Positions 1 to 64,000 are shown, numbered from the stretch's first letter. The stretch: DNA of 64,000 bases from Hormiphora californensis (GCA_020137815.1 CM035361.1:4030001-4094000); one strand, 5' to 3'. A program made the numbers and translations. The notes: generated by a model not told the origin, from the sequence alone.

Positions 1-1440
1 GACACTCTGGTGCTGAATGGAAATAGTTATTGGTGTGAGTTCATTGTAATTTACAAAAAGTATCAGTGCCGTTTACCTGCTCTGTATGCTCCACATCGCC
101 ACCAACCCACGTTGGAACACATTCACTATCTGAACTATCTGCGAACAGGTAGTTTAGCACCTCCACATTGTTACATGTGATGATGAGGGCATTCTCCGTT
201 TTAGTGATGGTCCAGATCTTTTCCACATCCACCGGGGGTTGCACTGGCAGGTCTGTATAGGCGATGCAGTAGCCTATGTAGTACCGCATTGGGAAGGAAA
301 ACTGTACAGCCACCCCACTTATCTTGCTGCTTTTATTGTCGTACACCCCTATCGAGAACTTCTGATCATCACTGTCCAGTGCCGAGTCTGTCTTTATCTG
401 TAGGGGTGTTCCTTCCAGGTCCCAGGGTATGAGGATATCCCGCTCTATAGGTTTCCATTCTGAAATGCATAGTCCGATTTATATGCCGTCCTTACCCGAC
501 AAGGCCAAGGCAGTAGAACTGACACTGACGAAGAAAAAAGGAGAATGAACTCACCAATTTTATCACACTGTGGTACATCAGCTGACCACGATCCATCCTC
601 CTGACAAGTCAGTGTTTCACTTCCGTTTAGCTTGTGGTTGGCATCACATTCGATGGTGGTAGTTGTCCCTGTTGGTGAGGCAGGCCAGTTTCCTTTTGTT
701 GATCCCTCAACAGTAAAGCCAGGACACTCAATTGGTTCTGCAGAATGAAAATAGAAATGGGCGTGAGTTTAGTGTAATTTAAAGGTGATATGTTTGATCT
801 GCATATTAGAAAGCCGCTAGCATAAGTGTAGCGAAAAAAGGAGCATTATACCTGCTCTGTAAAAATCAGACGCTGTGTCATAGCTTCCACTAAACGAGAT
901 GTGCTCCACAACATTACCACCCAAAATTGTAACACAGCGGGTATCGGAACTATCTGCGAACAGGTAGTTCACCACCTCAACATCATTGCATGTGATGATG
1001 AGGGCGGTCTGTGTTTTGGTGATCGTCCAGATCTTTTCCACCTCAGTACTTTAACTTATACTTCACTGGGGAAGAGAACTCAACTACCATATTACTGATA
1101 ACGCTGTCCTTGCCGTTCATATTCACTCTGATTCGCTCACCACTGCCTACTACGGAGTCAGTCTTTATCTGGAGGGGTGTTCCCTCCAGGTCCCAGGGTA
1201 TACTTACAGCCTTCTTTACAGCTGTCCAATCTGAAATGTATAATAAAGAAACTAAGATCACTAAAAGTAATCTAGTGCAAACAAATGTATCATGTTATCG
1301 AACATTTTATAAAAATATCACACACTACAATTCTACATAGCATTACATACATATTTGATATTTGACATGATATGTGACGAACCTGCAGTGAGAACAGCTG
1401 TTCCACACAATGCAGCTGTGAAGAGAAGACGGCGTATCAT
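1..1440 (-). pseudogene. Secreted multidomain gene (signal peptide, then alternating ~140-aa 'PWDLEGTPLQIKTDS' and sushi/CCP domains), frameshifted; runs off the window start
   Basis: GT-AG exons 1440-1383 (MIRRLLFTAALCGTAVLTA), 1230-852, 737-555 (sushi: EPIECPGF...IECDANHKLNGSETLTCQEDGSWSADVPQC), 459-77 and 12-1. Both large exons have lost ~40 nt relative to their paralogues (at ~1043 and ~87), which breaks the frame. Confidence 0.85.
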
Positions 1441-1664
1441 GTTTGTCATCAGAAGGAGACGAATGAAATAAACATAACAAAACTATATCAGGAGTCAGTA
1501 AGGAGTGGTAATTGGTGACATATAGACACCTGGCGCGACCCCAGCTCAATCTTGGTCGCGCACGGTGTCTATGTCATGTCACCAAGAGTGGTAAAAAGGG
1601 GGGGGGGCTTGGTAAAACCCAGACTAATATGACCCTCGTTAGGTTTTCAGATATTTCCCACAGT

Positions 1665-1780
1665 CATAGCTCCATTCCCTGACAGGATAATGACTTGAAA
1701 TTTCGAAGAACATGATAAGATCTTTATAGTTCATAGCCTCCAAATTTCAAGTATCTTTCCTGTCAGGGGGTGGAGCTATG
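1665..1780. repeat. Small inverted-repeat (MITE-like) element
   Basis: catagctcca..cctgacagga..acttgaaattt is mirrored by aaatttcaagt..tcctgtcagg..tggagctatg. Confidence 0.6.
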
Positions 1781-1907
1781 CACGTCTTAACGTTTAAAAT
1801 CCTGTCGCGTGTAGAAAGGCGTCAGGTCTAGTTTTAGGCTCGTTTCGGGTCAGATGACATAAAAGCTCCGCGGTTTGGTCGACTATATCCAAAAAAAAGG
1901 AGCGTAT

Positions 1908-2057
1908 GGGGAAAACAGTCGTGCCTGATCCTCAGCTTCAGGCCACAGCTATTTTCACTAAGACCTGAGATCTCACGTTTCAGTGACGGCCATTCCCTGA
2001 GATTTAAGGGAACAGCCGTCACTGAAACCTGAAGTTCAGGCACGACTATTTTCACCC
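1908..2057. mobile_element. MITE of the 'ggggaaaacagtcgtgcctga' family; relatives at ~7593-7646, ~33909-33965 and ~57566-57644
   Basis: Imperfect terminal inverted repeats and dispersed copies within the window. Confidence 0.65.
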
Positions 2058-2158
2058 AATCCGAGTTCAACTGAAGCTTTTTTGAGCTCAGAGGTATAAT
2101 GTGCAGTCTGAAAGAAAAGGATAGAAAAAGAAAGACAGCACCTTTCAATTCTTCGTAT

Positions 2159-2335
2159 CGTTCTGAAGGTGAATAGAGCGGAGAGATACATACCAAATAT
2201 AGTGCGAATCGCTACCCTTTTCTCTCTAACCGCGCCCATTACCTCTAAGCTCAGAGGTAATGGTTAGAGAGAACAGGGTGATGATTTTTTACTATGTTTC
2301 GTATGTATCTCTCCCTCCTATTCACCTTCAGAACG
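2159..2335. repeat. Hairpin / MITE-like inverted repeat
   Basis: cgttctgaaggtgaatag..ggagagatacatac pairs with gtatgtatctctcc..ctattcaccttcagaacg. Confidence 0.65.
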
Positions 2336-3208
2336 CTTAAAAAGAACGCTCCCGTTCTGCCCGTTCTTTTTTAGGGAAAGAGAGAGGGAGAGAAAGAGAG
2401 GGAGAGAAAGAGAGGGCGAGCATTTTATATTTTTGGTTTGAAACCTCCCTATATTATAAAAATGGGTAATATACCAATTCTTGGTGTTCGAAGGAAATAG
2501 CGCTAATTAGCGGTTTTAATAGCGCTAATTAGCGCTAATTAGCGATAGCGCTATTTATCGATAGCGCTAATAGCGCTAATAATAGCGCTATTTCACAAAA
2601 TAGCGCTAATTTTGACCGCTAATTAGCGCTAATTAGCGATCAAAAATAGCGGTAATTAGCGGTAGCGCTATTTTAGCGCTTTTTGTAACCGCTAATCGGG
2701 CAATTTTAGTAAAAAATAGCGCTATTAACACTTACAAAAATAGCGCTAATCAGCGCTAATTAGCGCTAATTAGCGCTATTAACATTCTCAATTCATTTTG
2801 TTCGAACCGCTAATTAGCGCTATTTTCAATTTCATCAAAATATAGAAAACGCTATGATTGGATAATGTATGTCACGTGACAAAAATCCTGTCATGTGACG
2901 AAAAATAGCGCTAATTAGCGCTATTTTTGTAATCGCTAATTAGCGCTAATTAGCGCTATTATCAACTTAAACGTTTATTATTTTGTTAATAGCGCTAATA
3001 TGCGCTAATTAGCGCTATTAATATTTTGCAAATAGCGCTAGTTAGCGCTAGTTAGCGCTAATTAGCGATATTATCAACTTAAACGTTTATTATTTTATTA
3101 ATAGCGCTAATAAGCGCTAAATAGCGCTATTAATATTTTGCAAATAGCGCTAATAAGCGCTTATTAGCGCTAATTAGCGCTACCTAGCGCTATTTGCAAA
3201 ATATTAAT

Positions 3209-4258
3209 GGTAGAAGGGCCACGGCCCTTGAACACCGCCACGTGGCGGTTTTAACCGCCACGTGGCCCCTGGACGTGGCGTCAATTTTCAGGACGTGGCG
3301 CCAATGAGCCTTTTTGGCGGTGTTCATGTGGCGTTAATAGTCGAAATTGGCGCTTCGAATTGGCGCTTTTCTTTTTTGGCCCCAGGGACGTGGCGTTGGC
3401 CCCAGGACGTGGCGTCAATTTTGAGAGGATGGCGCCAATGGATTTTTTAGTCGATTTTAGCGCCACGTGGTTTTTTGAATTTTCGGTGTGGCGTCAATAA
3501 TTGACGCCACATAGTTGGCGCCACATAAACTCCGCCACATCAAAGCGCCAAAGTAATTATTAGCGCCATTAACATGGCGATATATTTATATAAACACAGC
3601 CCTTTTTTAACTGTTCAATCCTTGATGCCTCTGTGGGTCTTTAGGGACTTCTACGGACATTCAGTGACCTCTGGTGTCCTCTTGGGGCGTTTCAGGGGAC
3701 TCTAGAGAACTCTAGTGGCTTTTTGGGGGCCTTGTGTGCTCATCTGGGGCTGCATTCGATCTTTCTGGGCTTTTGAGGGACTCTAATCGACTCTAGTGGC
3801 CTCTAGGGGTCTCTTGGAGCCTTCTAGGGGGCTTTTAGGTGACTCTAGCGCCTCCTGGGGGTCCCTAGGATCCACTAGGGGGTTTCTGGTATCAGTTTAT
3901 ATGGCGCCAATTTACATGGCGCCAAAAAATTAGCGCCAAAAATTAGCGCCAAATGATAGGCCAAAAAAACAAATTGGCGATTCGAATTTTTCGGGTGTGG
4001 CGTCATCCGAAAGCGCCAAAAAATTTTGACATCTCCGCCACTCAAAAATTGACGCCACGTCCTGGGGCCAACGCCACGTCCCTGGGGCCAAAAAAGAAAA
4101 GCGCCAATTCGAAGCGCCAATTTCAACTATTAACGCCACATGAACACCGCCAAAAAGGCTCATTGGCGCCACGTCCTGAGAATTGACGCCACGTTCAGGG
4201 GCCACGTGGCGGTTAAAACCGCCACGTGGCGGTGTTCAAGGGCCGTGACCCTTCTACC
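3209..4258. mobile_element. Nested long-TIR MITE (GGCGCC-rich, Merlin-like ends)
   Basis: TIRs >200 bp starting GGTAGAAGGG; 8-bp TSD ATATTAAT (3201-3208 / 4259-4266). Confidence 0.9.
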
Positions 4259-6742: not shown

Positions 6743-9700
6743 ATGGAGTACAAGGTACTTTTTGTTGTCTCTACAATCCTAGTAGAAAGCGAAAAAGAAA
6801 AAAAGTCATCAGGGTGATGTGAGTGTAATACTGTAATATTTATTGACCAAAAATCAATGATCAGACCAGAATTGAAAGGAAAATTTTTTGGAGCTTAGAA
6901 TGAGAGAGATTTCACTGCTACAGCCAACTCTCTCACCTACTGCAAAGCATTTTCTATTTTAATATCTCCTCCCTATTCACCTTTAGAATACCGAGAAAGA
7001 AATGAAAAGTAATTCTGTACACAAAGGTGAACTTCCTTCCAGTTCTATATGCAAAACACTCAACCCTACATTATTTAACTCTTCAAAGCGAGTTATTATC
7101 ATCAATATTCCCCATTCCCCAAATAACCCTTCAGCAGGTTCATAAGATCAATCAAGAATATTATACCCTAGACCTCATCCTGTTATCCATCCTCGAAAAC
7201 CCTCATTCGCTGATTCCGTACCCCTCTCCAGGCAAGAGCAGGTGTAAGCACAAGGAGGCGCTGGCAAGGTACACGAATGTTAGTGTAACTACAGCGGGTG
7301 ATACGACGTGTAGCGATGAGGGGGAAGTTAGCGCTTCAAGTACAGTCATCACAGAACGATCTATTAGGTGAGCAATGGGGCTGAGATATTGGGTGAGCAA
7401 TGGGGCTGAGATATTAGGTGAGCAATGGGGCTGAGATATTAGGTGAGAATGACATCTGTTCTAGGTGTATTAGGTGAGCGATATGGGGTTGGTAGGTGAG
7501 CTGTATCAGACCTAAAATGTGATTCACTGTTCTGCTTCAATTTAAGTTCCGTTTTGATTCCTTTTTGGTATTTTTTGATTTTCTGGGTATAAGGGGAAAA
7601 CAACTTCGTGCCTGAACCTCAGGTACAGGCCACGGCTATTTTCCCCATAGCAAAAGTAATTTATATGTTGCTTTTATGCTGTTTTCTTTTTATAAGAAAC
7701 CTTCTTTTTTCAGGTCGATTGTCCGAGAGACGACAGCTAACAAAGAGATCCAGCGTCTCCAGGATCTTAATATCCAGTTGTCATGTCAACTGGATGCATT
7801 AGCTAAAGGTAAAATACACATTCTCCAGAAATCAGATTTTTAGTCAGATTTTTGTCCTAATCCCCAAGTCCCAATCCTCAAGTCCTAATCCCCAAGTCAT
7901 GATGCAGGTTTCAGTTTTGGGTATATTTCCGCATATAATAATCCTCTTCTTGTATCAAGCTTAATTGCCATTGTCCTGCAGGGTCTACATCGATCCGAGA
8001 TCTATGCAGTGTACCAACACAAATCAACGGTGTTGAAGAGGAGGAGGAAGAGGAGGAAGAGGACAACACATCGTCAGCACTGGATATAACTCTCCAGGTT
8101 CGTACCTTCTTCAGCACTGGATATAACTCTCCAGGTTCGTACAGCTTCTTCTAATTATTCTCCAGGTTCGTACAGCTTCTTCTAATTATTCTCCAGGTTC
8201 GTACAGCTTCTTCTAATTATTCTCCAGGTTCGTACAGCTTCTTCTAATTCTTCTCCAGGTTCGTACAGCTTCTTCTAATTATTCTCCAGGTTCGTACCTT
8301 CTTCTGATTCTTCTCCAGGTTCGTACCTTCTTCTAATTATTCTCCAGGTTCGTACCTTCTTCTAATTATTCTCCAGGTTCGTACCTTCTTCTAATTATTC
8401 TCCAGGTTCGTACCTTCTTCTAATTATTCTCCAGGTTCGTACCTTCTTCTAATTATTCTCCAGGTTCGTACCTTCTTCTGATTCTTCTCCAGGTTCGTAC
8501 CTTCTTCTGATTCTTCTCCAGGTTCGTACCTTCTTCTAATTTTTCTCCAGGTTCGTACCTTCTTCTAATTTTTCTCCAGGTTTGTACCATTGCCAGCTGT
8601 TAACCACTCTATTAACAGGTGCTCGCTAAAAATTTTGGGGCATACATGTCCTATCATGGACCTCAAAGGGTTAAGAGTGAGAACGTTCGATCTCACACAC
8701 GTGTCAATGTCACTAAACCCCTCCCCCCAGGAAGATCTGGATGCTACCCTGAAGGAAATTGTTGACCTGAGACCCCACCCTCCACCGAGATCAGCTACCA
8801 AGGAGAGGCCGAGATCTGCTACCAAGGATAGATCTGCTACCAAGGATCAGCAGCAGAGAATAGGACGGACTGGTGAAGACCACCATACAAAAAGGGACCA
8901 CCACCAGAGACCAAAAACTGCTGAAAGCGGAGATCACCATTCTACAAGAAGGGCACCAAGTGGAAATACATCACCGGCTACTAAGACAACACCAATTAGG
9001 AGGACAGTTGGGCCGGACAGTGGATATGACAGTGTAAAGATCAATAACCGACCCACCTCAAGTGAGTGAAGTACTTGATAATTAGAGAAATTAGTGAATA
9101 TTATTCGATCTACCGAACCCTCACAGCTCATGCGGTGTGAGCCACACTTATTTTATACATACCTAAGCTGTGTGCTTCTTCAGTTAATCAGTCATCAGTA
9201 ATAACAATCAATTATTTATTTCCCTAGAAGAATTGAACACAGAACTACTTCAAGATCTCGAGGAGGAGAACGAGGTATTGAGATCAGAACTAAAATCATC
9301 TGCAAACGCCACAAAAGAACTGATGGCACTAGAAAGCGAACTTCGCAGGTGTGTAATGAACTGAGAATTGATCTTATTCGAGACAAAAAAAATTATTCGA
9401 GACAAATATTCGTGCGTCGAATATACCTACTTTTTAACTTAACCTACTTTTTATCTGTAAAAGCTTCTCTCTCCTAATTAAAGTAACAATCTCTCCCCCA
9501 GGTTGCGAGATGAAAGTGACATGTATCAAGATGAACTAATGCGACTAAGAGGAGTTGAGGAAAAGTTGATCCAGGTAAAGACCTTTTTTTTCTTTTTTCA
9601 TATATATATATATATATATTTCAAACTTTTCAACACTACTTTAAACAAATTAATTTGAGTGTTCCGCTTATAATCGATTCGATCCGTGTCAGAGTTAATT

Positions 9701-12700
9701 TACTATTCTCCGATATCTTTGAGTAACGCAAATCTCTTTCACTTGGGCTTTTTTGTGAACGTTATTTGAGTTTTGGGGATAGTGTTAATCTCTGTCCAGG
9801 AGTGTGAGCCAGGTGTTTTAGGATGAACAGTATGACTATGAGAATTAATGACGTAGAGATAACGAGTAAAGATGAGTTTGATAGAGCTCTTAACCCTTTG
9901 ACGGCGAGAAGGATTGGCTCGATAGAATTGTCTAATTTTTCGTTTATAAGTAGATGTTATCAACACAAAACGCCTCGAAAAGGAAATTTGTAATTCCGAC
10001 ATGTAGTTTTTGCTGGGCCCACTGTAGCATATATGATACTATCGCCCGTAAGGGAATTCTAGTAATAAATCTAAATTGTACAAGTTTGTGGGTGTTATGG
10101 CATAAATTCATGCTTTCATGAGGTTTGTAGCTACAAGTTCTACATTCGTGAACGGTTTTTACCAGGAAAAGAACCCAAATTTGAGATTTGTATCATATAT
10201 GATACTATCGTCCAAAGGGTAAATTCTCCTAAAACTTACATAATTCGGGCTAGAAAAGGAGCTAAGAGACAAATCAGGGCACTAAAATGTGTAGAATCAT
10301 CGCATTAGTGGGGGTAGAGCACATATTTAGGTCGCTATCCGGACCCCTAATTGAGATAATTGCATAATTAGCTAATTATCTGTCCCGCGTGTGCTAATTA
10401 TTCATGAAACTTTGCTCTGGGAAGGAGTTATGAGACAAATGGGGGCACTAAAATGTGTAGAATCATTACATTAGTGGGGGTAGAGCACATATTTAGGTCG
10501 CTATCTGGATCCATAATTGAGATAATTGGATAATTAGCTAATTAGTTGCCCTGGAGCGCTAATAAATGAGACTAGGCGGAGTATACAAGACAAGTGAGGG
10601 CACTAAAATGTGTAAAATCATCGCCTTAGCGGGGGTAGAGCACATAGCTGAGTTTCTATTCCCACTCCTAATTGAGATAATTGGATAATTAGCTAATTGA
10701 CGGTTGCACACCGTCCACTTTTCACCAAATCCCGTGGTTTCTAGGTAATCCTGAGCTCTTTTGCTCAATCTAAGGATCTTCTGACATCCCCTAATATCCC
10801 TAAACCCCTATAACCGTGTGTCCAAACAATAAATATGGGAAACTGTAGTACATTAGAGGTTGAACGTGTTGTAGGAGCAATAGGATATAAAAATTCTATA
10901 GGAATGTAGTTGGATCTTGGATGTATGAGAGGTCTAGGATGGAACAAGAGGGTTCTAAAGAGCTGAAGGCAGTGTCTAGGGATGTATCGAGTGCTATAAT
11001 ATTGTGTAAAACGAGTCATAGGTGATACAAATGGGGTTAGGGGTTGTCAGAAGATCCTTAGATTGAGCAAAAGAGCTCAGGATTACCTAGAAACCACGGG
11101 ATTTGGTGAAAAGTGGACGGTGTGCAACCGTCAATTAGCTAATTATCCAATTATCTCAATTAGGAGTGGGAATAGAAACTCAGCTATGTGCTCTACCCCC
11201 GCTAAGGCGATGATTTTACACATTTTAGTGCCCTCACTTGTCTTGTATACTCCGCCTAGTCTCATTTATTAGCGCTCCAGGGCAACTAATTAGCTAATTA
11301 TCCAATTATCTCAATTATGGATCCAGATAGCGACCTAAATATGTGCTCTACCCCCACTAATGTAATGATTCTACACATTTTAGTGCCCCCATTTGTCTCA
11401 TAACTCCTTCCCAGAGCAAAGTTTCATGAATAATTAGCACACGCGGGACAGATAATTAGCTAATTATGCAATTATCTCAATTAGGGGTCCGGATAGCGAC
11501 CTAAATATGTGCTCTACCCCCACTAATGCGATGATTCTACACATTTTAGTGCCCTGATTTGTCTCTTAGCTCCTTTTCTAGCCCGAATTATGTATGTTTT
11601 AGGAGAATTTACCCTTAGGACGATAGTATCATATATGATACAAATCTCTAATTTGGGTTCTTTTCCTGGTAAAAACCGTTCACGATTGTAGAACTTGTAG
11701 CTACATACCACATGAAAGCATAAATTTATGCCATAGCACCCACAAACTTGTACAATTTAGATTTGTGACTAGAATTCCCTTACGGGCGATAGTATCATAT
11801 ATGATACGGCGCCTTAAATGTTAATAACTCATTCAATTTTCAATATTTTTTGATGCGGCTTTTTGCATTCGGTCGGTTATGACGAGCACTTTTATTCCTT
11901 CAAAGGATTAGTTGTGCCCCCAAAAAACAAAAAAATGAGAAATGTTTTTAAAAAAAGGCCGAAATTAGCCTCCTTAGAAGGGCTATAAAATTTTTTTCTT
12001 GATTTTCTGAGCTGATCTGGACGTAGTTTTAGGTTCATAATCCCTAAAACTAGCTTGTGACAAAATATGGGCCACCTAGATAAAACATACGGACTTCCAG
12101 GCCGCCTAGAATAGACTGTAGCATATATGCTCTGTCGCCGTCAAAGGGTTAAAGCTCTGACTTATAATAGGTGTAGTGGTGAGCATGTCTTAGATCGTCT
12201 TCGGGTAGGTGGGGATGCTCCTTCGTTCAACAAAGACAATGCCTGGGAACTTCTCTGTGCTGCTTATTCCTTGATTCCAGACAACCCGAGGGTGAGATTT
12301 GATAGTGGTGTTAGTTCCGTATTGGACACGTCCCTGGTGGGGAGTGTAGCGGATGTACTGAAGGAAAGCTTTGAGAGTCTGAAGATGGAGTTACTTGCGG
12401 TGGTTGAGCAGAAGGTAGAAGACAAGGTGAGTGAGCTGCGTGGAAGAAAGGAAGAGGTTGTAGAAGATGAAGGTCCGGTTGCGCCTGTGAGGAGGTATGT
12501 TGATATAAGGTTGGATAACTCTGATGCTGAAGGTACGGCCCCGGTCTGTCCAAAGACGCAGTGGACGGAAGTTGTAAAACCCCAAGTGGAAAAAGCTTTG
12601 AAGGGAGTTCCTGTGATGAATGCGGTAGTGAACAAAGGTAGTGTGCGGCTGTCATTCCAGAATGAGGACCAACTTCAGGAAGCCAATAATGTTTTACCAC

Positions 12701-15700
12701 CAGCACTTGGTCAGGAGGTTCAGATGGTCACAGAGACGAAATCGCTTCTTGACCCAAGAATTTCAATTGGCGATCTTGGGCAGGACTTGCTTGACAAGGA
12801 TACGTTAATCTCGGAGATAACTAGTGGAAAGAATGAGGAAATTAAGAAGCTGGTGGATCAGGGTGGAAAAGTGAAAGTGGTTCATATGAATCCCACTAGA
12901 AGGTTTGCAGTTCTCCAGGTAACTCCAGAAATAAGGAATGTAATCGCCCAGAAAGGGGACAAGGTATTCCTGAAGCTGAGACAATATTGGATCAGAGACA
13001 GGTATCATGTGGTACAGTGTTTTCACTGTCAGGAGTTTGGACATGCCAACGATAAAGAATCTGAATGGAGATAGAGATCTTCTGGCCAATTATCGCCCAG
13101 TCTCAAACATTGCATTTGTTTCCAAGGTCTTGGAAAAGGTGGTATTAATTCAAATGAATGACTACCTACAGAAAAATGATTTACTGAATGCCAATCAGTC
13201 GGGCTACCGAACTGGTCATAGCTGCGAAACTCTTCTGGCTGGAATGTTTGATGACTTGCTGAGAGAACTTGATTCTGGAAAAGTGGCGGCACTCATGCTC
13301 TTGGACATGAGCGCAGCTTTTGATACCGTTGATCACGAGAAGCTGATGGAGGTGCTGGAGGTGAGGTTTGGTGTGAAGGGAAGTGCTCTTGGATGGTTTA
13401 AGAGTTATCTGAGTTCCAGGAGTTACAGAGTAAATGTCAATGGTGAACTCTCGGAGGTCATCGCTCTCATTTGTGGAGTACCACAGGGATCTTTGTTGGG
13501 TCCTGTACTGTTCCTGTTGTACATTGAGGAGCTACAGGATATTGCTAGACCATATGGTCTGATGATAAAGCTGTATGCAGATGATTCCCAGTTATATGTT
13601 GGACTTGTCCCAACGGATAGTGAAGGGTGGAAAGGTACGAAGAATAGTATTGAGGAGTGCCTCACTTCTATTAAGAACTGGATGGTGCAACATTGGCTCA
13701 AATGTAATGAGAGTAAGACTGAGTTTGTTCTTCTTGGAAAATCAAGCTCTCTTGAGAAGATGGTATTCGATCCGGAAATCAGATTTGGGGATGCAGTGCT
13801 GCAGCCGATGGAATGCAAAGGAAGCACAGGGAAGACTCTAGGAATACTTTTGGATGAGCATCTTACCCTGGAGAGGCAGGTGAACAATGTTAAGAGACAA
13901 TGTGGACTGCAACTCAAGAACCTATGGCAACTCAATAAGTGTTTGGATAATGGCACACGGATTCTTCTTGTGAAGCAATTAGTCATATCAAAGATAGACT
14001 ACTGTAATATCCTGTACTTTGGACTTCCTAAACGGATTCTGAACAACCTTCAAAAGGTTCTGAACTCCTGCGTACGGTTCATCTATAACTTGCGAGGACA
14101 TCAGGATAGCTATGATGAGTATTTCAAGGAGGCTCATATCCTCCCAATACAGCAGAGACTGACCTTCAAGGCCTGCCTGTTAGCGTACAAAATTGTACGT
14201 GGAACTGCTCCGGAGTATTTACAAGAACTGGTCCCTAGAGATGAGGATATTCTGGATATGAGACCAACGAGAGCGAATTCAGTGATTGACTTCTATAAAC
14301 TGAAATATCCTAAACTCTCGAGCGTTAATGCAAACTCTAAACTGAGGAGGAGGAGGGTTTCGGTGTTTCTACCGACAGTTTGGAACTCCTTGCCTTTGGA
14401 CCTGAGATCTGTACACCCCATTGAGTTGTTCAAATCTAAGTTGAAGACCAGACTTTTTCTTGAAGCGTTCCCAGCAACTACTCCTGAGGACTCCCGGTGT
14501 GGCGTCTGAGTTGTTCACCGGACTCCCCATCTGTCAGTAGGCGGTCTTGGGCGTGCTCACCATTTTCACTTAGGGCTTTTTTATCAGTATTGTTGAGCTG
14601 CTGATAAGTGTGGGTTGTTGGCTTTGTCCCCTTTATTTAATAAAGTCTGTAATTTTTTCATCTTATCAGTTTTTTGAAAGTTATGTGACCAGTTATATTT
14701 TTAGTATATCTTCAATTAGGAGTGAGTTTTTTCCAAAGTGTGTAAGAATATAAGGATCTTTTTTGCGTTAGGTATACCGCTCTGAAGCTCGTCAGTGTCA
14801 GATACAGTTTGACTTGTCTGGCCCTGTCGTGTCTGTGGCGGTATACAAAACTTGATATTATTATATCTCCTTCGTTCCTATATCTATCACCCCCACCCCA
14901 ACATGTGAACCCTGTCAGGCAATGCCTCGACACATATAATTGCTCCAATCAGGTGGAGACTTTCTATCACAAAGAGAAGAAGACATTCCGTGTGACCATT
15001 GAAGATACACTGATAACCCTGGAGGATTTTAGGAAGGATGTAAGTTAAAAAATGGAAATAAGTTGTTTCAAAAAGTGTGTGTTCAATAAACAACCGATAT
15101 ATGAATTTGACGTTTGTTTTGCCCTAATAAATTCTCATCAATACCCACATTCCTCTCTATATCTCTATCTCTACAAATGCTTCTCTCTCCCCAGAAAGAG
15201 GAACTTCATCATGAACTGGCGAGGATGGGAGAATGTCTGAAAGATGCAAACGCAAAAAACAAAACGCAAAAAATTGAAATTGAAGAACACGAAAAACTGT
15301 TTACAAACAACCAGGTTTGAATAACATGTACAAAATTTTCTTGTTCAATTTCAGTTTTAGCTAATCCGGCAAATTACTTCAAACTATGTATTAGCTAAGG
15401 GGACAAATCGTCAATTTCTTTTCAGGAAAAGTTGAAGTTGGAACTTGAAACAAGACAATCAGAGAACGGGATGCTGCAAAGCCGCGTTGACACCGTTGAA
15501 GAAAACTGTCATTTCCTTGAAGGACAGGTATACTTGATCTGGTGTTCACTGAATTGGAACATCACGTGATCTGGTGTTTCCCCATATTTGGGCATCACCT
15601 AATTTGGACATCTATAGTACCCCATATCATTTTATTCCCAATATATTTTAGGTACTCCATATCATTTTATTCCCAATATATTTTAGGTACAAGCCTTGGA

Positions 15701-45869: not shown

Positions 45870-48800
45870 TGAGACCTGATCGTAGAGGAGGGATTGACCC
45901 TGCTTAACGCGGAGACCAACAAGGGTGAACCCTGCTACCGGCACTGAGAGCTCCCCCGACGTAACACTCGTGGGGAAGAAATGGGCTGATAGAGCAGACG
46001 GCATCCCGACCGACCTGATCACCTTCCCATCATATTCAACATCAGATCCAACCTCGCCTTACAACAAACAGATCAGTCGACCTCCCAAGTGGAGAGCAAA
46101 TGTTGACCTTTCCAGCTTCACAGCCGAGCTAGAGAACGACTTCCTGGACTTGGAGGAGGAACAAACACTCCATAGAAGGGTGAGAAGATTCCAGGAAAAA
46201 GTTGATCCAAAGCTGCGGAAAAGCATGTGGGGAAAAACAGTACCAGGAAAGGGCACGATGAACCCCAGAGTAAGAGATGCCGTGACAAAAAGGAACACCC
46301 TAAGAGAGAACGTGAAAGACCCAAGAGAAGAATGGACTTGAGGCATGCGACAACGCCGCCAACCTGATGGACGAAGCAAAAACTGGACCGGTGGGAGGAA
46401 AACTCTTGCTGGAGCAGAGATGCAGGATCCCCAGCTATGAGGCTCGTGCGCTCCCTCAATGGATGCCCTGACACCAACAACCCAAACGAAGCCCTGCTCC
46501 ACAAACGGCCGACTCATCACAACATAAAGAGAAAGGCCGACATATTGCTTCCCTTACGCCCGTTTAGTTCCCTGAACAAAACAGGACCAGAACGTACAGA
46601 GACCAACCTGAAGCTCAACGGACCTCGAGGAAGACCAAACTGGAGAAGACGAAGTAGAAGCTCCAGCTAGCTCCCCCTTTACAATAAGGAGCTAAAGGCA
46701 TAAGCATAAGAAAAGCAAGAAAAGGGCGCACCGGCCCAAATGACATAACACCTGCTTTCATCAAAGCCCTGGGAAGCAACGCCCTGGAAGAACTCCTTGC
46801 CATCTTTAACCAGTCCCTGCACTCCAACATCTGCCACAGATTTGGAGGACTGCCTCGATCATCCCCCGTTGAAGGCTGGCAAGCCAGCCAAGGTCCTAGC
46901 GTCATACAGGCCAATCAGCCTCACTTCATGTGTGGTGAAGACAGCAGAGAGAATGATAGCGGACAGAATCTACCACCTCGCAGAGACTGGAGGCTGGTTC
47001 ATCGCCTCCAGGCTGGTTCCGGAGAGGACGATGCTGTGAAGACCAGGTACTCCGGCTGGTCCAATCTATAGAGATGGCTTCCAATCCAAACCCTCCAACA
47101 GAACAGTAATGGCACTACTAGACCATCCAGGCTTATGACAAGGTCTGGAGGGATAAGCTCCACTGACATGTACAACAAGGGAGTACCCAAACCCTATTCG
47201 CTGGCTTACGATGCTTCCTGAACAATCGACTGCCAGAGTTAACTACAATTATAACTCCCACAGCTCATACGAATCCCAGACAAGGACTACCACAAGGGTC
47301 AGTGTTGGCCCCACTGCTATTTCTGTTTTATATCAACACACTTGCAGAGAACTCCCGGAGGACAGCGTCAACTCCTATTGTTGACGATTGTCAACAGTCA
47401 CCGGTATCGGCTCCACACTCGGAAGGCCGCCCGTAGCTGCCAGAGGGCGGTTGACATAGTAGTGGAGTGGTGCAGGGAATATAAGATGATACTGAGTGAC
47501 AAGAGCGTCAGCACCTACTTTACACATCGAGTAACGAGCCCACTGGAGACCCTCTCTCAAGCGGGGGAGATCATCTTTCTTATGACCCGACACGAGACTC
47601 TTGGGAGTTATCTGGATAGCTCACCTTTGGTCCTCACGTACAAGTCACTGAAGGAGAATCAACTCCAAGTGTCGAATCCTAGCAGCCCTCAGTAACACCA
47701 CTGGGGATGGAAGAAGAACAGTCTGCTAAAGGTTACATACGCACATCCGAAGTGTACTGGACTACTCCGCTAGCGCCTGGCAGCCGTGGATTTCTGATAC
47801 AAACAGAAAAACCCTTGAAACCCTACAGAACAAGCTCTACGTCTAATCAAGGCCAGTACAGATCCACCCCCCTTGAAGCTCTAAGACTAGAAGCAGGAGT
47901 GCAAAGCTACACAACACAATCCAAGAGGCTCCTGCTAACGGCCAGCCGAAAAGCCCTCAGATCTCCACAGGATCACCCGCGCCGGCTAGCGGTTGAGGGA
48001 ACGGTAGCACACAGGCTAGTACGGCCTAGCTTCCGGACCAGATCTGAAGACCTCCAATCCCATCTCCCAGCCACATTCGAGAATAGAGAGGAGCTCTCCT
48101 ACTCCACCCCCTCCCTGGATGGAGGAAACACAATGACCATCCACCAACACTACCGGGCGGAGTGACAAAAAATACCTTCCCGCGGATGACCTGAGAACCC
48201 TCACACTGTCGACCATCAAGTGAACACAAGGCAGAGGTAACGATATACACAAGGAGGGTTATACTTCCAACGGAGGCAGTGTATGGTGGCAGTGGAAGGC
48301 GTGGTATGGTGGCAACCACTGGAACCCCAAAACCCCACCGTCATTGACACCATCAAGACTAGAGGACGACCGACACCTCATCATTTGAGAGGAGCAGAAG
48401 CTTGGAGGAGGACCAAACATCATAGAAGGGTGAGAAGATTCCAGGAAAAAGTGATCAAAGCTGCGGAAAACATGTGGGGAAAACAGTACCAGGAAAGGCA
48501 CGATGAACCCCAGAGTAAGAGATGCCGTGACAAAAAGGAACACCCTAAGAGAGAAACGTGAAAGACCACAGAGAAGAATGGATGTGAGGCATGCCACAAC
48601 GCCGCCAACCTGATGGACGAAGCAAAAACTGGACCGGTGGGAGGAAACTCTTGCTGGAGCAAGATGCAGGATCCCCAGCTATGGAGGCTCGTGCGCTCCT
48701 CAATGGATGCCCTGACACCAACAACCCAAACGAAAGCCCTGCTCCACAACGGCCGACCTCATCCAAACAATAAGAGAGGCCGCACATATTTGTTCCCATT

Positions 48801-51363
48801 ACGCCCGTGTTAGTTCCCTGAAATAACAGGCACCCAGAACGTACAGAGACCAACCTGAAGCTCAACCGGATCCTCGAGGAAGAACCAACTGGAGAAGACG
48901 AAGTAGAAGTCCTACCCTTACTAGCTCCCCCTTTTAACAATGGAAGGACTAATGACAGCTATCAAGAAAAGCCAAGAAGAAGGGCACCGGGCCCAAATGA
49001 CATAACACACTGTCTTTCAATCAAAGCCCTGGGGAGCAACGCCCTGGAAGAATCCTTGCCATCTTTAACCAGTCCCTCATCAACATCTGCCACAGATTTG
49101 GGAGACTGCCTCGATCATCCCCTGTGAAGGCTGGCAAGCAGCCAAGGTCCTATCGTCCCATACAGGCCAATCAGCCTCACTTCATGTGTGGTGAAGACAG
49201 CAGAGAGAAATGACGCGGACAAATCTACCACCTCGCAGAGACGGAGAGGCGGTTCCATCGCCTCCAGGCTGGGTTCCGGAGAGGACGATGCTGTGAAGAC
49301 CAGGTACTCGGCTGGTCCAATCTATAGATGATGGCTTCCAATCCAACCTCCAACAGAACAGTATGGCACTATCTAGACCTATACAAGGCTTATGACAAGG
49401 TCTGGAGGGATAAGCTCCTCCTGACCATGTACACCAAGGGAGTAACCAAACCCCTTATTCGCTGGCTACGATGCTTCCTGAACAATCGACTTGCCAGAGT
49501 TAACTACAATTATAACTCCCACGCTCCATACGAATCCTCAGACAAGGACTACCACAGGGTCAGTGTTGGCCACCCACTGCTATTTCTGTTTATATCAACA
49601 CACTTGCAGAGAGACTACCCGGAGGCAGCGTCAACTCACTATTTGCTGACGATTGTCACAGTCACCGGTATCGGCTCCACACTCGGGAAGGCCGCCCGTA
49701 GCTGCCAGAGGGCGGTTGACATAGTATGGGTGGTCAGGGAATATAAGATGATATGAGTGACAAGAGCGTCAGCACCTACTTTACAACATCGAGTAACGAA
49801 GCCCACTGGAGACCCTCTCTGCAAGCGGGGGAGATCAATCTTTCTTATGACCCGCACCGAGACTCTTGGAGTTATCCTGGAGACTCACCTTTGGTCCTCA
49901 CGTCAAGTCACTGAAGGAGAAGATCAACTCCAAGTGTCGAATCCTAGCAGCCCTCAGTAACACCACCTGGGATGGAAGAAGAACAGTCTGCTAAAGGTGT
50001 ACAATACGCACATCCGAAGTTACTGGACTACTCCGCTAGCGCCTGGCAGCCGTGGATTTCTGATACAAACAGAAAACCCTTGAAACCTACAGAACCAAGC
50101 TCGTACGTCTAATCACAGGCCAGTACAGATCCACCCCCCTTGAAGCTCTAAGATAGAAGCAGGAGTTCAAAGCTACACAACACAATCCAAGGGCTCCTGC
50201 TAAGGCCAGCGAAAGGCCCTCAATTCCACAGGATCACCCGCGCGGCTAGCGGTTGAGGGAACGTTAGCAACAGGCTAGTACGGCCTAGCTTCCGGAGCCA
50301 GATCTGAAGACCTCAATCCCATCTCCCAGCCACATTCGAGAATAGAGAGGAGCTCTCCTACTCCACACCCCCTCCCTGGATGGAGGGAAAACACAACTAC
50401 CATCCACCACACACTACCGGCGGAGTGACAAAATACCCTTCCCGCGATGACCTGAGAACCCTCACACTGTCGACCATCAGTGAACACAAGGCAGAGGTAA
50501 CGATATACACAGAGGAGGGTATACTTCCAACGGAGGCAGTGGTATGGTGGCAGTGGAGGCAGTGGTATGGTGGCAACCACTGGACCCCCAGAAAACCCCA
50601 CCGTCATTGACACCATCAAGACTAGAGGACGACCGCACACCTCATCATTTGAGGAGGAGCTAGAAGCTATGAGGACAGCGTCCTCTTGGCTCCACTCCCA
50701 CCCCCAGTATTGGAGAGTGCTGGTTTGCACCGATAGCAAATCGCTATGCGACAGCATGGCAAGTACAAACCCAACAGCGACAATAGCCGGACTACTACAC
50801 GGTATGGGTGGATGCAAAGCAGACATTACCATTCGGTGGATCCCCAGCCATGTGGATGTTCCCGGTAACGAACTAGCTGATAAGGCAGCCAAGGACGCAA
50901 CCACCCTGGAAACGGAGAATCAGGGTGGAGAGGCCAGTATCCTTCGCAGCCGTGAAGGCCCACATACGGCGGGTGATAAAGGACGAGCCGGTACAACACC
51001 AGCGGACTGCAGAGACCTACAAGAACTATAATAAAGACACGGACAAAGACATAAGGACGAGAAAGGACCAGGTACTCATAGCTCGTCTCCGATCGGGCCA
51101 CCATAATGGTTTCCGAGCCTACCAACACCGGATAGATAAGGCCGTGAGCCCGGAATGTCCACACTGTCCAGGACAACAACAGGACCTGCAACATTGGATG
51201 CAGGACTGCTCCCGAACCTCTGGCGAGAGAATGAGGTTATTCGGGACGACTCGGACAACACTCGACCTACTTACGTTCGACCCGGGGGGATCAGTGGAGC
51301 TGGCGAGGAGGACTCTAGGCCCTCCTCGGCTCTAATCTCCCTAGAACTACTACTACAACAACA
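45870..51363 (+). mobile_element. 5'-truncated non-LTR retrotransposon with RNase H (I/Ingi-like), internally duplicated, many frameshifts
   Basis: APE endonuclease C-terminus (PTRVNP..SSPDVT), RT (SYRPISLTS, DLYKAYDKVW), RNase H (VCTDSKS, WIPSHVDVPGNELADKAAK), C-terminal CPHC..HWMQDC and a ctactactacaacaa tail. Segment ~46150-48395 is repeated at ~48396-50665. Confidence 0.9.
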
Positions 51364-52807: not shown

Positions 52808-53019
52808 TGTTGTGTGCCATGTACATGCAGTGTACATTGTACACTGTACATGTACTGCAGTACATGGCTGTGGTGGGAGAAATGGCTCACCCTAGAACAA
52901 TTCCATTGCAAGTTAATAGCAAAAAATGCATTATAACCTCACTCCGATTTAGTGGCACCCCGATTTAGTGGCAGGATTTTTTCCCCCGAGGATGCCACTA
53001 AATCGGGGTCCGACTGTAA

Positions 53020-53108
53020 TATAAGTTTTTGTATACCGCCCAGGCAAAACAGGGCCAGCAAATTGAATTTTGACTGACACTGTTCAGCGTCAGAGCGGTA
53101 TACCTAAA
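53020..53108 (-). mobile_element. Isolated 3'-terminal fragment of the L2-like family
   Basis: The reverse complement resembles 14770-14860 (taggtataccgctctga...ctggccctg...ggcggtatacaaaa). Confidence 0.7.
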
Positions 53109-63467: not shown

Positions 63468-64000
63468 TATAATAATAATAATAATAAAGGGTTTTTAGTA
63501 TACCGCTCAGTCCAGACAGGGCTGGATCATTGACATGAGTCCAACACTGCCCAGATTCAGAGCGGTACACCAAGGTTGCTAATATCCTGACTCACTTAGA
63601 ACAAAATAGACACATCTACTGATTATATACTCCAAAAATTGAAAAAAGCCTAAGGAAAAACGGGACACATAAACTTCTGGAAAACAACTTGTTAGCTGAA
63701 ATTAAATAACAGACTATAAATCGAGATAAAGAAACAAAGCCAGTAGCCCTCATGCTACAAACAAAAGTCAGCCCAACTGCATCAGCAGCCCCCCTGCTAT
63801 AATAGCCCTAGGAAGGGAAATAGTAAGGAATTGCTATGCTAGAATTGCCTGCTCGACACGGGAAAGGGGAAGGATAGGACACCTCCGATTACAACTCTGA
63901 AGCAGATCCGAATGCCTCCTGAAACAACCTTGTCTTTAGTCTTGTCTTAAACAGATCAACAGGATGAACTGATCTGAGTTCAAGGGGGAGATCATTCCAT
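63468..64000 (-). mobile_element. 3' end of a second L2-like LINE (continues past the window end)
   Basis: 63999-63889 encodes WNDLPLELRSVHPVDLFKTRLKTRLFQEAF, homologous to the ORF2 end at ~14380-14470. It has the same terminal gcggtatac stem and a (TTA)n tail. Confidence 0.9.

Follow-up and report, generated by a model that had tools for sequence, protein, structure and literature searches.

The window analysed here is a 64,000-nucleotide stretch of the genome of the ctenophore Hormiphora californensis (G000:C12:4030001-4094000 of the 110.7-Mb, 45-contig assembly that was searched). It contains a copy of a long interspersed nuclear element (LINE) whose 5′ untranslated region (UTR) is fused at position 9619 to the host spliced leader (SL), a fusion that is confirmed as an observation. 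Directly 3′ to a (TA)n run, the 41-mer TTTCAAAC...TTTGAG occupies positions 9619-9659 of the + strand as an exact match and as its sole occurrence in the window, where the number of matches expected by chance is zero. A 163-nt UTR (9660-9822) follows, and then the ATG of the first open reading frame (ORF1) at 9823. The junction reads GAG/TGTTCC (slashes mark junctions and splice boundaries), so that the final AG is followed by T and no GT donor is present.

The element is bordered on both sides by host exons of the same strand. In addition to the two that flank it immediately, there are three further + strand exons, at 9233-9350, 15195-15315 and 15427-15529, which are open, in phase and bordered by GT and AG when read in frame. 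Since the flanking exons share these properties, the LINE copy appears to sit in sense orientation within a host intron, a placement based on exons read individually in frame. The features of the locus are as follows.

9503-9575, + strand: host exon upstream of the element-bearing intron, ending ...ATCCAG/gtaaag; the sequence shows an open frame and a GT donor
9619-9659, + strand: spliced-leader sequence of 41 nt, comprising the 43-nt SL exon except its initial AG; 5′ terminus of the LINE copy, equal to the published SL and to the SL RNA gene exon
9660-9822, + strand: LINE 5′ UTR, 163 nt, beginning TGTTCCGCTTATAATC; two further genomic copies match it at 100%, and 20 copies have the same junction
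9823-9893, + strand: first part of ORF1, from the ATG at 9823 to the TTAA target of a nested insertion; collinear with the uninterrupted ORF1 of copy L063
9894-12148, no strand assigned: nested, non-autonomous piggyBac-like foldback miniature inverted-repeat transposable element (MITE) of 2255 bp that interrupts ORF1; TTAA duplicated at 9890-9893 and 12149-12152
12153-13045, + strand: second part of ORF1, ending inside the first CCHC knuckle through an internal deletion; 99.8% identical to L063:1731-2627, the ORF1 alignment showing the missing C-terminal knuckles
13042-13045, + strand: junction at which about 2.1 kb has been deleted internally, with a 4-nt overlap; positions 1172-3268 of the near-full-length relative L085 are absent
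13046-14509, + strand: remnant of the second open reading frame (ORF2), with reverse transcriptase (RT) and C-terminal domain and a stop at 14507-14509; Pfam RVT_1, E = 2.5e-28
14510-14866, + strand: 3′ UTR with a long-range hairpin and a short (ATT)n tail; GGTATACCGC at 14771-14780 pairs with GCGGTATAC at 14838-14846
14952-15039, + strand: host exon downstream of the element-bearing intron, preceded by ...caatcag/ and followed by /gtaagt; open and in phase with 9503-9575

The window copy is dead, having been inactivated by the MITE insertion and by the deletion of about 2.1 kb, which removes the end of ORF1 (the knuckle region), the apurinic/apyrimidinic-type (APE) endonuclease and the N-terminal part of the RT. 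What remains of ORF2 encodes a protein 100% identical to that of a copy at C6:3940049, which itself lies within an open frame of 1105 amino acids (aa). The full ORF2 domain content of the family is taken from the metagenome contig L085, a near-full-length relative (89-90% identical) in which Exo_endo_phos (E = 5.7e-11) and RVT_1 (E = 1.7e-28) occur within one 1034-aa frame, the window copy retaining RVT_1 only. The MITE is recognized as piggyBac-like from the duplicated TTAA and from its CCC...GGG termini, which belong to the terminal inverted repeats CCCTTTGACGGCGA... and ...TCGCCGTCAAAGGG; its internal inverted arms are 771 bp long and 98.4% identical, and it contains internal repeat units spaced about 155-165 bp apart. 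L063 has a single TTAA at the position where the window ORF1 carries the MITE. As the two ends of the LINE copy are embedded in TA/ATT-rich sequence, its target-site duplication is ambiguous.

Genome-wide, a search with the RT returned >1500 first-look candidates, and the 90 copies that were scored are dispersed and 66-100% identical; from the coordinates of the RT matches, full-length genomic copies measure about 5 kb and their ORF2 frames span 1006-1106 aa. An APE-like domain followed by an RT in ORF2, variable 5′ truncation, unrelated flanks and dispersed copies together identify the family, on sequence criteria, as an APE-type non-LTR (long terminal repeat) retrotransposon, that is, a LINE. 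ORF1 of the family ends in CCHC knuckles, and these, the 3′ hairpin and the (ATT)n tail in place of poly(A) would fit the CR1/L2/Jockey group generally, without deciding the clade.

The spliced leader as the constant 5′ terminus of the LINE family

The genome paper reports the trans-spliced leader of H. californensis as GAGTTTCAAACTTTTCAACACTACTTTAAACAAATTAATTTGAG, carried by 56% of Iso-Seq reads (PMC8527503). The window 41-mer is identical, over 41/41 positions, both to this published SL and to the exon of 16 SL RNA genes distributed over the genome. By these genes the SL exon is 43 nt long and consists of AG plus the 41-mer, the window copy being without the first two bases; the published sequence has an additional G, which may be derived from the cap. 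Each SL RNA gene has the arrangement SL/GTAAGCTGAG, with a GTAAG donor and a structured intron (SL RNA folding z = -4.35) containing a U-rich Sm-like site, and is preceded by a conserved upstream region (..CCATCAGC/AGTTTCAAAC). Some of the genes are clustered at G000:C13:3181656-3195351, others are paired head-to-head on C5, C9 and C11 with a spacing of about 600 bp, and one single gene resides at G000:C12:4023262-4023299 (-), 6.7 kb to the left of the window. In a run of transcriptome-like contigs (X1, 44 Mb, whose RNA status is a guess), 484 contigs could be mapped, nearly all of them on the SL, and the loose ends just behind the SL vary from contig to contig. The SL is free of G except at position 2 and in the terminal GAG, and its positions 30-41 (window 9646-9657) make up a perfect 12-nt palindrome, CAAATTAATTTG.

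A first-pass annotation of the window, made from its sequence, had taken the 41-mer for the host leader, and the published SL, its abundance among Iso-Seq reads and the SL RNA genes bear this out. The order that it described, from (TA)n run through 41-mer and UTR to the ORF1 ATG, is the order found at 9619-9823; the donor that it reported missing is indeed absent, and its placement of the element in sense orientation in a host intron agrees with the flanking exons as read in frame. It had allowed that the locus might be a one-off chimera, should other full-length copies of the family prove to have a different 5′ end. Among the 22 family copies that reach the start of the 5′ UTR, recovered by searching the genome with the window 5′ UTR, no full-length copy with a non-SL 5′ end was found: 22/22 carry the SL at the same junction. 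It had also proposed counting the SL matches that precede this family, and the exact junction SL/TGTTCC (GAG/TGTTCC) occurs 20 times in the genome, across three subfamilies.

The SL is thus the constant 5′ terminus of the whole LINE family and part of the retrotransposed unit. The upstream flanks of the 22 copies are mutually unrelated, and several family copies (L062, L065, L066, L072, L074 and L075) are truncated at differing points within the SL, from which it follows that the SL belongs to the unit that is retrotransposed. Among 62 sampled non-gene SL copies, 41 extend to 41-43 nt and 21 are shorter. In more distant subfamilies, with 66-69% amino-acid identity in the RT, an SL of the same strand is again present about 3 kb upstream. 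A chimera or chance match confined to the window locus would require that the SL be absent elsewhere from the family; with zero matches expected by chance, 22/22 family copies bearing the SL and hundreds of other SL-bearing repeats, this explanation has practically no probability left and is rejected.

The SL might also have been left upstream of the LINE by site-specific insertion into SL RNA genes. LINEs of the NeSL, SLACS and CRE type insert into SL genes, have SL-gene flanks and encode a restriction-enzyme-like (REL) endonuclease, and they resemble the present element in lying beside SL sequence. Such an origin would account for the direct adjacency of the SL and the LINE 5′ end, and the single SL RNA gene to the left of the window lies close by. 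However, the upstream flanks of the copies are without the conserved SL-gene promoter (..CCATCAGC), in addition to being unrelated to one another, and the sequence 3′ to the window copy is not SL intron. The endonuclease is of APE rather than REL type, and the copies are dispersed on all large contigs, so that in Hormiphora the SL travels with the element to unrelated sites. On the evidence of the flanks and the endonuclease, insertion of this kind is rejected, and the chance that we would still accord it is close to nil.

A third possibility is template switching, in which the LINE RT would jump from the 5′ end of the LINE RNA to free SL RNA or to an SL-capped messenger RNA, leaving the SL as a chimera tag of the U6/L1 type. 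LINE reverse transcriptases are known to switch templates, as in U6-L1 chimeras, and SL RNA is abundant. Random switching would nonetheless produce variable breakpoints, whereas the base on the LINE side is the same in the 20 exact copies from three subfamilies, and the junction is always at the 3′ end of the SL exon and never includes SL-intron sequence. Given a junction that is constant on both sides, template switching is rejected as highly improbable.

The association of the SL with repeats extends well beyond this family. Core SL matches number 626 in the genome, of which 16 belong to SL RNA genes, leaving about 610 that do not; the first-pass annotation had suggested that such non-gene matches be sought. 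The first 30 SL sites in position order on contig 1, taken as a sample, include no SL RNA gene and lead into >25 different downstream repeat families. The ORFs adjacent to SL sites cluster into three ORF1 superfamilies, and three further SL sites (C1:7438570, C2:3718785 and C4:828340) are followed by Pfam RT matches at a distance of 2.8-3.8 kb. It is on this clustering and on these few SL-to-RT coordinate matches that the probable identity of the other SL-headed families as LINEs is based. Almost no Pfam matches were obtained for the first ORFs adjacent to SL sites, a scarcity that is usual for LINE ORF1 proteins.

The genome paper lists 718 leader sequences and treats them as SL loci open to mis-mapping of Iso-Seq leaders, with no link to transposons (PMC8527503). 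These published leader loci are the same genomic objects as the SL copies described here; in the present analysis only 16 are SL RNA genes, and the sampled downstream sequences are repeat families.

Probable renewal of the leader and possible starts of the precursor RNA

The three subfamilies of the window family share only 53-62% identity in the 400 nt that directly follow the SL, yet the SL itself is 41/41 identical wherever it is complete. Relatives of ORF1 are encoded at 38 marine-metagenome loci, and here the combinations of leader and body become informative. Four different LINE bodies from one metagenome sample are headed by the Hormiphora SL, and other metagenome LINEs are headed by different G-free leaders of about 40-45 nt that end in (A)ATTTGAG or AATTGAG; the genome paper reports AATTTGAG to be mostly conserved when the leaders of Mnemiopsis and Hormiphora are compared (PMC8527503). 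One leader can stand before different bodies (L104/L109/L111; L108/L112), and the body GACTCCATTT..CTGTGGTTGAAAAG stands behind several leaders at an identical junction (L094, L097/L099, L102 and L111). Many of the metagenome LINE contigs are about 5 kb long and begin no more than a few bases from the leader, which would be expected of collapsed repeats whose unit begins there.

An SL that stays identical while the adjoining UTR diverges, together with related LINEs that carry other leaders at the same junction, argues that the SL is renewed by trans-splicing. Trans-splicing is likewise supported as the probable source of the observed leader/body combinations, which a merely inherited encoded leader would not give. 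We therefore consider the feature in the window to be, very probably, a dead copy of an APE- and RT-encoding LINE whose RNA had received the 43-nt host SL by trans-splicing before it was reverse-transcribed. In the proposed cycle, LINE RNA would receive the host SL and be reverse-transcribed, leader included, into a new DNA copy. In each generation the precursor RNA would be trans-spliced anew at the AG that ends the encoded SL, and the splice would exchange everything upstream for a fresh capped SL, so that the same 5′ end is restored.

The choice of this acceptor follows from two observations, namely that every 5′-complete copy examined encodes the SL and that the SL keeps being refreshed, which together point to the terminal AG of the encoded SL. 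As the body of the SL is without G, this is also the first AG after positions 1-2. The first-pass annotation had proposed both that the ...TTTGAG end of the leader supplies a self-regenerating acceptor and that re-trans-splicing regenerates an identical capped 5′ end in each cycle; the former is favoured by SL renewal and by the presence of the SL in every 5′-complete copy examined, the latter by SL identity and by the leader/body combinations. Within families there are junction variants 3 or 6 nt apart, located right after CAG or TTTCAG (SL/CAGGAAG versus SL/GAAG, and SL/TTTCAGCAAC versus SL/CAAT), which have the apparent signature of alternative acceptor choice. Tandem SL-SL relics, in which the 3′ end of one SL is followed within 15 nt by the 5′ part of another, were not found anywhere in the genome.

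Several points weigh against renewal by trans-splicing. The other metagenome leaders matched no SL of a named species in a text search of the literature, which was made without the leaders of Derelle et al. 2010, and none of the X1 contigs, their RNA status being a guess, matched the LINE body, though the SL was covered. Reading the Hormiphora SL from its sequence disclosed no clear branch-point motif at the usual distance. In principle, the invariance of the SL could be maintained by selection on the encoded leader. Moreover, the encoded and the trans-spliced SL are identical in sequence, and DNA alone cannot show that a given transcript has been re-spliced.

The chief alternative is that the SL was acquired by trans-splicing once, or rarely, and that transcription now starts at or near the first base of the encoded SL, no read-through from the host being needed. 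The promoter would lie in the SL or the 5′ UTR, and the encoded SL would be kept by selection, as mimicry of host messenger RNAs, or swapped as a 43-nt outron. Conservation between subfamilies is ~80% in the ~50 nt that adjoin the SL, far above that of the rest of the UTR, as in the internal promoters of Drosophila LINEs; a promoter, an enhancer of splicing or a site of protein binding could account for it. The start of the SL RNA gene, ...CAGC/AGTTTC, also resembles an initiator, and the 5′ ends of family insertions are all intact, unrelated as their contexts are. However, an internal promoter without re-splicing is difficult to square with one LINE body under different leaders in different samples, or with a 41/41 identical SL across subfamilies as diverged as these. 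The alternative as a whole we regard as unlikely, though it deserves serious consideration.

Renewal by trans-splicing leaves two possible starts for the precursor RNA, since both host read-through of a promoterless element and an internal promoter at or near the start of the SL fit the observations. In the stronger version, a group of ctenophore LINEs (at least the three ORF1 superfamilies found here, plus the relatives with other leaders) would have no transcription start of its own and would depend on host read-through only, taking its 5′ end and cap from SL trans-splicing at the acceptor that the leader recreates. We put this forward tentatively, as a proposition with somewhat less than even prospects.

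Related systems and implications

Genomic leader sequences on retrotransposons have been noted in parasitic flatworms, where SL-like loci occur on LTR and LINE elements and are perhaps integrated trans-spliced retrotransposons, a passing remark made about loci discarded from a screen for SL genes (MBE 2025, PMC12582326). The likeness ends there: the flatworm report describes partial leaders only and offers no family-level junction analysis, evidence of renewal or acceptor model (PMC12582326), whereas whole LINE lineages in Hormiphora have the full SL as their constant terminus. In dinoflagellates, relict SLs are found on retroposed genes (Slamovits & Keeling 2008, cited in PMC12582326 and PMC12014239), and there too, in the account that these citing papers give, an SL-capped RNA has been reverse-transcribed, and the resulting copy carries the leader in its DNA at the 5′ end. 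The dinoflagellate cases, as described in those accounts, concern host retrogenes with tandem, 5′-truncated relic leaders, in contrast to the autonomous LINEs described here, which have one complete leader and no tandem relics. The tandem truncated relics are attributed to re-splicing at an AG inside the old leader; unlike the dinoflagellate leaders so described, that of the Hormiphora LINEs has its only usable AG in its last two bases.

Hydra offers a parallel at the level of RNA, in that about 30% of the Iso-Seq reads of transposable elements carry an SL (Genome Biol 2025, PMC12220107) and the RNAs of such elements pass through the host trans-splicing machinery. The available portion of that report makes no claim of a leader terminus encoded in DNA, which is the level at which the evidence for the Hormiphora LINEs lies. 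A functional analogy exists with the self-cleaving ribozymes related to that of hepatitis delta virus (HDV) at the 5′ ends of LINEs, namely R2 and L1Tc (Pr77/L1TcRz) (PMC3383444), which cut an exact 5′ end from a longer co-transcript and so require no precise promoter. There the ribozyme is encoded by the element and leaves an uncapped 5′-OH end, whereas in Hormiphora the cut would be made, and a capped leader provided, by the spliceosome of the host. A search of the literature yielded no paper on SL-headed LINEs in ctenophores, and no description of a LINE lineage with a complete SL as its constant terminus together with a regenerating acceptor.

If these assignments hold, hundreds of Hormiphora “leader loci”, and probably also the 491 reported for Mnemiopsis, would be the 5′ ends of LINEs and not SL genes, which bears on gene models in which the same false “first exon” recurs. 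The LINEs would constitute a natural system in which the 5′ end of a retrotransposon is made by the host spliceosome and the product carries its own regenerating acceptor, a third answer to the 5′-end problem of LINEs beside internal promoters and self-cleaving ribozymes. Should the promoterless, read-through version be true, it would be the spliceosome-based equivalent of the R2 ribozyme strategy, and most ctenophore “spliced-leader loci” would be retrotransposon heads. Each 5′-complete insertion would plant a potential trans-splice acceptor, which could in principle give rise to new trans-spliced units, nested intronic genes or truncated host messenger RNAs. The encoded leaders could also serve as molecular tags with which to trace full-length insertions and the evolution of the SL across ctenophores.

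Further elements in the genome and the window

Several SL-headed elements have a common pattern in the first ~60 nt after the SL (L001, L003, L009, L011, L022, L025, L030 and L038), in which a tiny upstream ORF (ATG..ATG-TAA/TGA) and a GCCC-NNNN-GGGC hairpin (..CAGCCCCGAAGGGCAG..) precede the main ATG. Judged from its sequence, this arrangement is possibly a translational control module.

Short SL-headed elements also occur as head-to-head inverted pairs joined at or within the 5′ parts of their SLs (L013:1409-1571, L016, L029 and L021), and further head-to-head SL pairs are found, for example, at C2:3466799/3466886 and C3:400014/400075. In the paired elements a hammerhead-like motif, CUGAUGA-stem-GAAAC, lies directly after the SL. 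An Rfam search of the families with CUGAUGA...GAAAC detected no hammerhead at E <= 0.01 and returned only spurious microRNA-hairpin matches, which the head-to-head SL pairs give rise to.

At two places SL copies lie 600-640 nt upstream of ORFs of cellular type, L004:348-896 (-) and L013:2171-3028 (+), which include immunoglobulin domains and an SLC35F-like transporter without introns. They could represent retrogenes tagged with an SL, or else real genes that happen to lie downstream of short SL-headed elements.

The 3′ hairpin of the window copy is kept in two other places in the window, a 3′ fragment at 53017-53107 (-) and a second copy at ~63490-64000 (-). The former is a 93-bp fragment, 80% identical to the LINE 3′ terminal hairpin region, and represents either a heavily 5′-truncated copy or a short element that has the LINE tail in common. 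The latter is the 3′ part of a copy from another subfamily, in which amino-acid identity is 77% across the 30 final residues matched and a long (ATT)n tail is present in addition to the same 3′ hairpin; it runs past the window to C12:4098280, and its SL/TGTTCC head resides outside the window at C12:4098254-4098280. Weak RT-like matches at 47209-47358 and 49265-49942 (+), with 24-38% identity to the LINE ORF2, mark the remnant of another, unrelated retroelement.

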